Position numbers and translations under genes: made by a program. Below, piece by piece: positions 52,194-55,417 of a stretch of 58,482 nt of DNA (the stretch's first letter is position 1; each line of letters starts with the position of its first letter). The stretch covers positions 1 through 58,482 of the forward strand of contig NIVC01004139.1 in NCBI GenBank assembly GCA_002269645.1, given 5' to 3'. This stretch comes from Macrostomum lignano. Its lineage: Eukaryota. The notes under the pieces were generated by a model. The model had not been told where the DNA came from and searched no databases. It worked only from the letters and a program-made list of their open reading frames with translations.

Positions 52194-55100
52194 ATGAATT
52201 CTACTGAGCCATATCCTCTGCGCCTGGCCTTGACCGCGGCGCAGGCGCATGTACTGGCAATGCGGGCGTCAAATTTCAACAGTGGTAGCGCAGAGATTCG
52301 CGCCAAATTTCTCATTATTCACGATCAGTTGCAAGAATCTGATTCAGCGAATCCTGCCAAATTCGTGTGTAACGCTGCACCGTTCATGTTTGTGTGAAAT
52401 AAGTCGACCTAATGTGATATTTTTGTCATACTGATCGTAACATCTGTTAGTTGTGTTTGGAACGCTCTTTGGGACAGTGAATATTCATCCGAAAATCCTT
52501 TCTGTCGTACAATAAATTTTAGTGTCCAGGATATCTTGTCGCCTGTTAAATATTGGTGTCCATGACATCTTGTCGCCTGTTAAATATTGGTGTCCATGAC
52601 ATCTTGTCGCCTGTTAAATATTGGTGTCCATGACATCTTGTCGCCTGTCAAATATTGGTGTCCATGACATCTTGTCGCCTGTTAAACCTTGGTGTTCAGT
52701 ATAGGATTTCTAACCTACATAGATGCGGTGTAGTTTTTTATGCCCCACTGTAGCTACGCAGTGCGCGCTCGTGTGACATTTTGCATCAGGCCAGGCCAGC
52801 GTTTCTCTCCCCTCATGACCGCTCAAAAAATGTTGATTTTTTAATTTAGTTTTTTTCGGGTTCCTGTGGATATGAAAGCAAGCACAGACAGTCTTCCCAT
52901 AAATGACTCACTTTGTCTCACTTGTCTCTACGCAGATTCTCCAGCTGTTCGGCGACACTGAGACCTGCTCGGCTGCTTGCAGGCGCCTGTTGAAAAACAT
53001 GTGCAGCGGTAACTCCGACAGGTGTGCTAAAATATTATTATTTTTTCTTCATACTTTCTAGAACAAAGTTTGCATTGCTATGCCATAATTCTCTAACAAG
53101 TGCCTCTATTCCCCACTCCAGGCCGTCCACTCTGCGCATGCTGCTCGACCCGGCACACGTCGGCAAAATTGTCGGTCGCGGCGGCGTCACGATCAAGAAT
53201 ATCCAATTCGAGAGCCACGCCAAAGTGTTTATTTTTGAGTGAGTAAATGTGGAGTTTCTTAGTTCAAAATCGAATCGATTCTGCCCGATCGTCAGACATG
53301 TACACCCCACGGCCAGTTTTTTGTTCGCGATCCTCAAATGAATGCGGCCGCTCAGGGAATCGAACCAGGTGTTGTGGCGCGAGTCAGACGCGTTTACCGC
53401 TGAGCAGTGCGATCTTTGATGTCCATTTTCATTGTGTTAAAGTTGAAGGCATCGACACAGGTCCTACAGTCGAAACAGACTCGAGCACTTGACGTTCCGA
53501 CATCTCGAAGAGGCCTAAAAAGGCGCTGCTTTGAACCCCAGAATAACCAGATCATTCTTGGCCGTGTGCTACCCAGCCACAGACGCAGGGAAATGAAACC
53601 CCCCCCCAAGCGGTCGTCGTGCTCAATTCGCCATGCGACCCATACCGTCGCGGACATTCGCGCATTGAGACGTTTCTAACAAAGAATAAAGACCTTTGCT
53701 GGTAGTGACCTTCAGGCTATTCACCTCACCCCGCTTGAGGCCACTCCCTGTCCCTCTGAACTTTTTCGCGAGCGTGTGAGCACTAAGGGTCTTTGACTCG
53801 TCAGCGTCTTTGTATCTATCCAATAACCAGTTGTGTCACTCGCAAAGAATGCGCTCATCTACTCTTTTCAGTACCAAAATTAGCGTTTTTTGTTCGTGTA
53901 GAAAAATGAAAAAAACTAGTACAATTTTCTAGACATTTTTAAAGTTTTTGAAGCTTCAACAATCGCCTGTGGCTGTCTACAAGCTGCATGTTTCACGGAC
54001 TACAGACTGCCTGAATTTAGGAGCGAAGATTGCGGGAAAACTTTCTCATATGCTCCTTTCTTCCTTTCTTATTTCTTTGATTCATAGATGGGAGAGGTTT
54101 CTGCGGGTCGTGGTTCGCTTTCAAAATCTCGGCTTGGCATGCAAATGATATTTCAGCACTCCTCTGGCACTGATGACCGAATGCAGCCAGTCTGTGGCTT
54201 TCACATTGGCCAAAGTGGCTCTGGTTCGCGGCTCACTTACGGCCGTAGCCTCGGCTATTGAGCAGCTGCTGGCGCTGTCTCGCAGTTTGTACCTGGCCAA
54301 TCCGCCAATCTCGCTAGTGCCAAAGCGGCTATGGCTGAGACTCCAGCAGCTCGGACACTGGTTGGATAATCCGAACAGTTTGTAGACGCGTTTCTAGCTG
54401 CGCGCTCCATCAATCGCAAGGCTCAGAGGCTGGCTGGCCGGCTATTCTATGGGAAGAGCGGGCGCTTCAACGACAGCTGGAATAGCGGCTTGGCTGAGAC
54501 TTTGAATGCCGCTGAGGTTGCTGCTGCTTCCAAAGAATCTTTGGGTAAGGCCAAGTACGGGTGTTAAATAGTAAAATAGAATCTTAGACAGTAAGCTCAC
54601 CAGGTAAGTACCTTACCTGGCGTTTTTTTTAGTGCTTTATCTGGTGTTTTTAGTGCTTCATCTGGCGTTCTAGTGCCTCACTTGGCGTTTAGTGTCACAC
54701 CTGGCGTTTATTGCCTACTTTTGGTGTCTCACGTGACTTTATTACCTACTTATGGTTCCTGCATGCATCTTACTCCGTACCTCACATCCTTAAGGGTTCC
54801 CAGTGCCGAAGAATATCTACCGAATTCTCCCGCACTGCCAAAGCCTCCATCGCTGGATTTCAGTCCGGGAGCTGCACTGCCTGGTCCACCTGACCTGCTT
54901 GTATTCGCCAGTGGGTGTCGAGCTAATAAAATCGGCTTTCAAAGCCGGCAAAGCCGCCGCTGCCGCTGTCGGACACGAGCTGACCGTCCGTGTGGTCGGG
55001 TCGCCGGAGTACCGCCTGATTCTGAAGCCGGCAGCCTCCGCCAGTGCCGCCTCTCCAACCGTTCCAAGCGAAGCCGCAATGTCCGCCGTCTTAACCGAAA

Positions 55101-55417
55101 TTCAATCATGGATCGCTTCGGCTGGCCAAGCTGACGGCTGCGAATTCCGCGTCCTCGACCGTGGGCCGACGGACTCGAAGATCCACCGTCAGCAGCTGCT
55201 GGCTCTGCTGCGCGAAGTCGGAGGCGGGACTCCAGCGTCGACAGCGAATCGGACGGCGATAAAGAAAACGACAGCAAGGAAGAAGAGGGACCCGTCTGCG
55301 AGAAGCAGCCTACTTGGAAGCCAAGCGTCAAAGGTGCGCTGGGCCGCGACAGCTGGCATTTCGCTTTCGGCGTCACCTTTTTCAAGAATGCCGGCTCTTC
55401 CATTGCCCGCTGTCTGA
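52194..55417 (+). CDS. Tandem KH-domain protein fused to eIF2-alpha-like helical and C-terminal domains; 1-bp frameshift in exon 4
   Basis: Exons 52194-52364 (acceptor at 52178-52179), 52936-53021, 53122-53238, 54157-54544 and 54804-55417; phases 0,2,2,1 once one C is added at 54371-54372. KH motif LRMLLDPAHVGKIVGRGGVTIKNIQFESHAKV...VRGSLTAVASAIEQLL. C-terminal [50 protein letters not shown] aligns by eye with eIF2-alpha domain 3. Confidence 0.72.
52521..52824. repeat. Short copy of the 33-34-bp array plus a 141-bp unique tail duplicated from 51351-51494
   Basis: About 5 units, then AAACCTTGGTGTTCAGTATAGG...CTCATGACCGCTC, nearly identical to 51351-51494. Confidence 0.93.
54615..54712. repeat. 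Degenerate tandem repeat of about 20 bp (ACCTGGCGTTTTTAGTGCT), KH gene intron 4
   Basis: About 5 diverged units. Confidence 0.75.

Follow-up and report, generated by a model that had tools for sequence, protein, structure and literature searches.

The α subunit of translation initiation factor eIF2 nearly always comes, to our knowledge, from one highly conserved gene, and its layout of three domains does not vary between archaea and humans. Domain 1 contacts the mRNA and the 40S subunit and carries the Ser51 loop together with the surface on which the kinases and eIF2B act; eIF2 phosphorylated at Ser51 inhibits eIF2B. Domain 3 (D3) at the other end carries all contacts of the α subunit to eIF2-gamma, with which it forms the rigid core of e/aIF2 (PMC8844851; PMC3553985). 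In a yeast/archaeal chimeric system, most of the contribution of the α subunit to Met-tRNAi affinity comes from domains 1 and 2 and only a minor part from D3, and the acidic tail of yeast eIF2-alpha lowers tRNA binding (PMC3553985). Here we describe a gene of the flatworm Macrostomum lignano that departs from this layout. It lies on the + strand of contig NIVC01004139.1 of assembly Mlig_3_7 (GCA_002269645.1), whose whole 58,482 bp make up the window. We regard it as very likely that this is a real, transcribed gene with three near-identical copies (Mlig005067/Mlig008331), that its product of 448 amino acids (aa) consists of a KH di-domain, a linker and a diverged eIF2-alpha D3 without S1 domain or Ser51, and that the frameshifts seen in the window are consensus errors.

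Partial copies of eIF2-alpha are known from viruses, where poxvirus K3L and ranavirus vIF2-alpha keep the S1 part (vIF2-alpha also the helical part) as a kinase pseudosubstrate. The flatworm protein resembles these mimics as a partial copy that keeps one functional surface for use outside the canonical factor, but it keeps the opposite end, the γ-docking D3. With eIF2-alpha and aIF2-alpha it shares the D3 fold, the order of secondary structures, the signature motifs and a match that starts at the domain 2/domain 3 boundary, and with the eukaryotic proteins also a helix and an acidic Ser-rich stretch after D3; unlike them, it has no S1/Ser51 loop and no detectable domain 2, and it carries two N-terminal KH domains and an extra tail of 53 residues. 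On the KH side, the di-domains of IGF2BP/IMP, PCBP2 and Nova give the best matches for residues 49–169, across the KH1–KH2 junction (6qey; 7vkl, 6gqe, 2jzx, 2ann), whereas the flatworm KH1 has MRAS in place of GXXG, the protein lacks RRMs and additional KH domains, and none of these relatives contains an eIF2-alpha module. Dim2/Pno1 and Krr1 likewise combine a canonical KH2 with a preceding KH1 that has no GXXG and serves protein contacts, and in Dim2 and Krr1 such a KH1 is a protein-binding module (PMC5738357). These are, however, maturation factors of the small-subunit rRNA and polypeptides separate from eIF2-alpha, with no sequence sign of common descent with the flatworm protein. Jia et al. 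(2010, J Mol Biol 398:774) are said to have described an archaeal two-KH protein, aDim2p, that associates with a/eIF2-alpha and 16S rRNA; by analogy, that complex is suggestive of a non-covalent counterpart of the flatworm fusion.

The gene begins with an ATG at 52194 and comprises five exons, separated by canonical GT-AG introns of consistent phase (Table 1). Mlig_3_7 is a PacBio/Canu build polished with Pilon, in which redundant duplicated blocks add up to about 180 Mb, and its annotation is a genome-guided transcriptome that combines RNA sequencing, a de novo transcriptome and trans-splice and poly(A) signals (PMC5730564). When the contiguous exon-5 translation was searched exhaustively with HMMER against 1.84 billion representative proteins, a single match was obtained, a 451-aa protein (P0001) that equals nearly residue for residue the spliced protein of an initial annotation of the window. 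The query, which also served for structure prediction, begins with 19 residues that are not native and ends in a frameshifted tail; these two parts are of low confidence in the AlphaFold2 model. The cluster of this protein has five members, identical wherever they overlap, among them PAA69434.1 (Mlig008331g1, contig NIVC01001324), PAA84837.1 (Mlig005067g1, 454 aa, contig NIVC01000359), UniProt A0A1I8J6A1 (‘KH domain-containing protein’, 448 aa from Met1) and PAA48472.1 (Mlig005067g2, 206 aa, P0002), the product annotated for the window itself, which terminates with the TAG at 54383–54385. A word-indexed homologue search missed all five from both halves of the protein, and negatives from that search do not equal absence. 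The precomputed Pfam list of the deposited protein already holds weak KH_1 and EIF_2_alpha matches.

In exon 4, frame 0 runs into the TAG at 54383–54385, while a second open frame, 54370–54544, joins in phase to the long frame downstream. Restoring one C at 54370/54371 gives readthrough (...LDNPEQFVDAF...), and restoring another at 55210/55211 gives the C-terminal frame DSSVDSESDGDKENDSKEEEG...DDCYC, with its stop at 55444–55446. With both bases restored and the last acceptor taken from the RNA-based annotation (54863|54864, tttcag|TCC), which lies 60 nt downstream of 54803/54804 and in the same frame, the five window exons translate exactly into the 448-aa protein (P0004, counted from Met1) to which all residue numbers refer. 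On both NIVC01001324 and NIVC01000359 the intact call is flanked by a RING-finger gene on its upstream side and, downstream and on the opposite strand, by an R3H-assoc gene. Going by the RNA basis of the annotation, the gene is transcribed and spliced. The initial annotation had drawn the same five-exon + strand gene from ATG 52194, in agreement with the introns, the phases and the models on the sister contigs, and had suspected the C missing at 54370/54371; it overlooked the second at 55210/55211, and its acceptor at 54804 and its stop at 55415–55417 (about 460 aa) have to be replaced by the RNA-based acceptor and the actual stop.

Three further observations concern the transcript. The transcript-based models begin at 52176–52194, and the AG at 52178–52179, adjoining the 5′ end, could be a spliced-leader acceptor, a candidate raised by the inclusion of trans-splice sites in the annotation pipeline (PMC5730564). 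If the 54803/54804 acceptor (cccag|TG) were used, 20 residues (PKNIYRILPHCQSLHRWIS…) would be inserted in frame ahead of D3, and inclusion of 54804–54863 is a possible minor isoform; near this acceptor an extra C at 54798 distinguishes the sister contigs from the window, as does, in one of them (L002), an A to C change at 54809. Intron 4 contains short tandem repeats with periods of 19–31 nt at 54613–54756, and the T-run at 54623–54625 differs by 3 nt in length in L002.

The eIF2-alpha part of the protein was identified by several profiles and by its predicted fold. Pfam EIF_2_alpha (PF07541, gathering score 22.8 bits) matched the true protein with 25.7 bits and the isolated segment with 28.1 bits, residues 258–307 aligning to profile positions 59–108; the reversed segment and eight shuffles gave no match to this profile. 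NCBIfam models of archaeal aIF2-alpha aligned residues 257–311 to positions 175–227 of 262 (E 1.4e-4), and position 175 is the published domain 2/domain 3 boundary of S. solfataricus aIF2-alpha (PMC3553985). For the exon-5 translation, AlphaFold2 without an alignment predicted a beta-alpha-beta-beta-alpha-beta core (predicted local distance difference test, pLDDT, 64–86), followed by a low-confidence helix at model residues 125–138. The first 12 Foldseek matches in the PDB were all D3 of human, yeast-type or archaeal e/aIF2-alpha (E 1e-5 to 4e-4), such as 8qzz_B and 2qn6_B (TM-scores 0.69 and 0.66, normalised to the isolated D3 targets) and 9hve_K (root-mean-square deviation 2.2 Å over 105 columns). 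The register found by hhalign is that of the initial annotation through all D3 elements, including the match over PIKINLIAPPRY and GCEFRV over GVFNIQ, and its best-kept segments are the eIF2-alpha signatures C-x-Y-x3-G-[IV]-[DE]-x-[IV]-K-x-A-[LF]-[RK]-A-G and P-x-Y. Domain 3 of eIF2-alpha/aIF2-alpha was found in this way with Pfam, NCBIfam, Foldseek and hhalign. Judged from these profiles and the predicted fold, residues 255–352 are a strongly diverged copy of eIF2-alpha D3. The copy appears to be old and not a recent pseudogene fragment, because its identity to canonical D3 is low and phmmer alone does not see it.

The residues that follow D3 support the same assignment. Residues 353–395 comprise a helix, predicted at low confidence, and a stretch rich in Ser and acidic residues; by inspection, the two are placed like the helix and the acidic tail at the C-terminus of eIF2-alpha. 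Since this mirrors a C-terminus that is specific to eukaryotic eIF2-alpha, convergence is the less favoured reading, and the sequence speaks for an origin from the 3′ end of the gene for a eukaryotic eIF2-alpha. The remaining residues, 396–448, form a tail without family match. The protein ends in ...DDCYC, encoded at 55435–55443. In Rab GTPases a CXC end of this kind is geranylgeranylated; here it is probably without meaning, as the protein has no Rab fold.

The N-terminal half is a KH di-domain. Residues ~5–82 form a KH-like, non-canonical KH1 with MRAS in place of GXXG, the first half of which (PLRL...) is collinear with IGF2BP KH1 and the second half of which aligns to IGF2BP1/3 KH1 in phmmer. 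Residues ~86–168 form a canonical KH2 of the type-I fold with a GXXG loop (GRGG, residues 104–107), scoring 31.1–36.7 bits against Pfam KH_1 (gathering score 21.5 bits). Furthermore, residues 49–125 align as one stretch to the IGF2BP1 KH1–KH2 di-domain (6qey, phmmer E 3.4e-7), and the closest solved relatives of the pair are the IGF2BP1/3 KH1–KH2 (E 3e-7 to 2e-6), PCBP2 and Nova di-domains. By analogy to Dim2 and Krr1, KH1 probably offers a protein-contact surface, and KH2, with its GRGG loop, is probably a single-stranded-RNA-binding domain. We also considered a Dim2/Pno1-like KH pair, which would make the protein a ‘Rosetta-stone’ fusion of the archaeal aDim2p–aIF2-alpha pair. No Dim2, Pno1 or Krr1 chain is among the 23 PDB sequences matched by the KH region at E <= 10, and with IGF2BP, PCBP and Nova as the top matches this candidate was rejected at the sequence level.

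A similarity to D3 was also noticed in the N-terminal region, where residues 3–56 (52200–52361, STEPYPLRLALTAAQAHVLAM…) score 6.2 bits against a metazoan eIF2-alpha D3 hidden Markov model (HMM; STEnmPIKINLIAPPrYVm…), a value matched by one of 1000 shuffles. Because the first half of an IGF2BP-type KH1 is collinear with this stretch, the signal is treated as chance or pattern similarity.

Between KH2 and D3, residues 169–254 form a predicted helical linker of ~85 residues, which is about the length of domain 2 and has no family match. A domain-2 HMM built from a metazoan eIF2-alpha alignment gave −1.1 bits on residues 168–257, equalled by 236 of 1000 shuffles, and the Pfam match and most NCBIfam eIF2-alpha matches begin at D3; the candidate assignment of the linker to domain 2 therefore has no support. 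The N-terminal S1 (OB) domain with the Ser51 loop, by which eIF2-alpha is recognized, is absent: Pfam found no S1 domain in the protein or in the three + strand frames of 51400–56400, where KH_1 and EIF_2_alpha were the only two families detected. Of the architecture read in the initial annotation, namely two KH domains fused to eIF2-alpha domains 2 and 3, the KH–KH part (a degenerate KH1 and an intact KH2 with GRGG, Pfam KH_1 31–37 bits) and the D3 without S1 were borne out by these profiles, by the fold and by identical transcript-based models on two sister contigs, and no upstream S1 exon turned up in the + frames scanned; the domain 2 part was not. Its statement that such an architecture had not been described agrees with the searched literature, in which no paper describes a KH/eIF2-alpha D3 fusion; the sequence itself is already present in GenBank and UniProt, where it is listed as an uncharacterised KH protein. 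The architecture is a real, unusual and undescribed combination in an already deposited sequence.

The window copy as assembled stops at 54383–54385, and we asked what its frameshifts represent by aligning the window with two sister contigs (L002 and L003) over the KH gene region and the upstream gene. The window is 99–99.8% identical to L003 overall, with no substitution over 52194–55600. What small differences there are amount to six one-base deletions, each on the window side and in a C/G context (45866, 53304, 53354, 54370, 54798 and 55210), half of which hit coding sequence in two different genes. The extra C at 54370/54371 and at 55210/55211 is present in both sister contigs. The upstream RING-finger gene (45814–49494, +) shows the same kind of defect, a one-base C deletion at 45866/45867 against both sister contigs that splits the RING motif, so that its product here has 632 aa from ATG 45876 and 664 aa on either sister contig. 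Because the deletions are homopolymer losses in one direction without substitutions, it is a strong inference from the alignments that they are long-read consensus errors on a short redundant contig and not pseudogenisation; the combination of disabling mutations and neutral substitutions relative to intact paralogues that marks a pseudogene is not seen in the window copy. For users of the genome, this means that uncorrected one-base deletions on the contig truncate at least two gene models.

The two intact copies bear on constraint. Between L002 and L003 the coding sequence has no difference over 1347 nt, while the introns show 8 events over 1905 nt and the 3′ flank 6 events over its first 154 nt; the probability of a difference-free coding sequence is ~0.004, which is modest sequence evidence of constraint. 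The exhaustive protein search found no orthologue outside M. lignano from which long-term constraint could be gauged. These data bear on the reading that the gene is a chimera of exon shuffling or partial duplication, transcribed without a selected function, or, as a variant, that the window copy is a frameshifted pseudogene paralogue. The lack of a detectable orthologue and the premature stop in the window would fit, and strain DV1 carries extra duplicated chromosomes, on which redundant copies could decay (PMC5730564). Against it, D3 is too diverged for a recent origin and yet an open reading frame of 448 codons with four correctly phased introns is intact; the coding sequence is free of differences between copies when introns and the untranslated region are not; and the variant has to face one-base C/G deletions alone, without a substitution against L003 over 52194–55600, and the same defect type in the RING gene. 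We therefore regard a non-functional product as distinctly improbable.

How the two halves might work together is suggested by what D3 does in eIF2. In the mechanism that we propose, KH2 would bind particular RNAs and the D3-like module would dock on eIF2-gamma domain II, where eIF2-alpha normally sits, in competition with eIF2-alpha; the resulting complex would hold eIF2-gamma, and eIF2-beta with it, on selected RNAs or away from them. That the protein is such a γ-docking adaptor, acting through KH2 and D3 as an RNA tether or a decoy, is a plausible but tentative reading of the sequence. In yeast Sui2, the substitutions L205E and V220E abolish γ binding (PMC8844851). In the hhalign register these two positions align to the F of SAF and the V of ELTV in the flatworm protein. 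The Sui2 sequence used has the right length and an L and a V at 205 and 220.

A bolder version would make the protein a true alternative α subunit, which forms an active ternary complex with eIF2-beta and eIF2-gamma, is immune to the Ser51 kinases and is targeted to mRNAs by its KH domains. D3 alone has all γ contacts (PMC8844851), the protein is without S1 and Ser51, and the GXXG of KH2 is intact, all of which would suit this role. Most of the tRNA affinity, on the other hand, comes from domains 1 and 2, with D3 a minor contributor, and the retained acidic tail is an element that lowers tRNA binding in yeast eIF2-alpha (PMC3553985); in addition, the functions of domain 1, that is, contact to mRNA and the 40S subunit and eIF2B regulation, are neither present nor detectably replaced. 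We consider an active α subunit of this kind very unlikely. Because domains 1 and 2, with the tRNA affinity and the Ser51 loop, are missing, a tether or decoy is, by analogy to eIF2-alpha, more likely than a fully active, stress-resistant eIF2.

The γ-docking reading has also to be weighed against a repurposed module, in which the protein is an ordinary KH RNA-binding protein and its D3-like domain, of eIF2-alpha descent, has no γ binding and serves dimerisation, RNA or other partner contact in a lineage-specific ribonucleoprotein. Several observations weigh against γ docking. The identity to canonical D3 is just ~13–21%; phmmer with the C-terminal half found no eIF2-alpha match in the PDB, which leaves similarity at the level of profile and fold; the hhalign match to 18 metazoan eIF2-alphas is weak (E 0.049); and generic ferredoxin-like folds follow in the Foldseek results from E ~1e-3. 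The F and V aligned to yeast L205 and V220 could be residues of the fold core and not of the interface. The full-length AlphaFold2 model without an alignment has a pLDDT of 42, too poor for judging the linker. The exhaustive search of the representative proteins found no orthologue outside M. lignano, no canonical M. lignano eIF2-alpha is among the 120 matches listed by another search, and the gene IDs Mlig005067 and Mlig008331 are absent from the searchable text of papers and from the supplements of five M. lignano papers. A repurposed module would account well for an extremely diverged D3 that is detected at profile level only, for a generic beta-alpha-beta-beta-alpha-beta sandwich of a kind common to many unrelated proteins, for a gene seemingly confined to one lineage, as is typical for fast-evolving accessory RNA-binding proteins, and for the flanking linker and 53-residue tail without eIF2-alpha signal. 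It accounts less well for the coincidence of the best-conserved stretches with the eIF2-alpha signature segments, for the conservative retention of the yeast γ-binding positions and for the retained helix and acidic tail after D3. We regard it as quite possible, if somewhat doubtful.

Table 1 Features of the KH/D3 gene in the window (positions on contig NIVC01004139.1).
Feature	Coordinates	Strand	Description
Transcript 5′ end / 5′ untranslated region	52176–52193	+	Annotated 5′-partial products start SGSSLG or SLG ahead of Met1
Exon 1	52194–52364	+	Start codon and first half of KH1 (PLRLAL...MRAS); donor TTC|GTGTGT, phase 0
Exon 2	52936–53021	+	Second half of KH1 (ILQLFGDTETCSAACRRLLKNM); acceptor ...ACGCAG|ATT
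Exon 3	53122–53238	+	First half of KH2, GRGG at 53174–53185; donor TGA|GTGAGT, phase 2
Exon 4	54157–54544	+	Second half of KH2 (to ~54286), then helical linker; one C missing at 54370/54371
Exon 5, first part	54864–55156	+	eIF2-alpha domain-3-like alpha/beta module; Pfam EIF_2_alpha match 54872–55021
Exon 5, middle	55157–55284	+	Helix (TDSKIHRQQLLALL) and acidic Ser-rich stretch (DSSVDSESDGDKENDSKEE); one C missing at 55210/55211
Exon 5, end	55285–55446	+	53-residue tail ending ...DDCYC, no family match; stop 55444–55446

Repeats lie in and around the gene. A 33/34-nt satellite (…GGTGTCCATGACATCTTGTCGCCTGTTAAATATT…) forms an array of 31.6 copies at 50311–51366, between the RING and KH genes, and recurs as an array of 5.4 copies at 52513–52695 in the first intron of the KH gene. 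In other parts of the window, similar arrays give rise to long spurious open reading frames, for example at 13327–14238, 30873–31550, 35264–36431 and 48388–48953. In intron 3, at ~53340–53420, a motif like a tRNA T-arm was noticed on the minus strand (GGGAATCGAACC…), which suggests the remnant of a tRNA-derived short interspersed element; ARAGORN and Rfam (E <= 1) reported nothing for this string. Two single-exon genes lie farther upstream, one for a DUF1242 protein (74 aa, 36872–37096, +) and one for a Tctex-1 family dynein light chain (202 aa, 37568–38176, −).

In conclusion, the flatworm protein keeps D3 and the tail of eIF2-alpha and has the S1 half swapped for KH domains, which would make it a natural ‘domain-swap experiment’ on eIF2. 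If γ binding is true, it would show how, without recourse to Ser51 phosphorylation, delivery of the initiator tRNA can be tied to particular RNAs or kept from them. In its fullest form, M. lignano would possess a second, Ser51-less α-type partner of eIF2-gamma that brings the initiator-tRNA GTPase to specific RNAs by means of its KH domains, a lineage-specific way of mRNA-selective initiation or of eIF2 sequestration that bypasses the integrated stress response; this is a prospect to which we give little credence. If there is no γ binding, a domain of an essential translation factor would have been recruited into a lineage-specific RNA-binding protein. Transgenesis and RNA interference in M. 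lignano make direct testing feasible.

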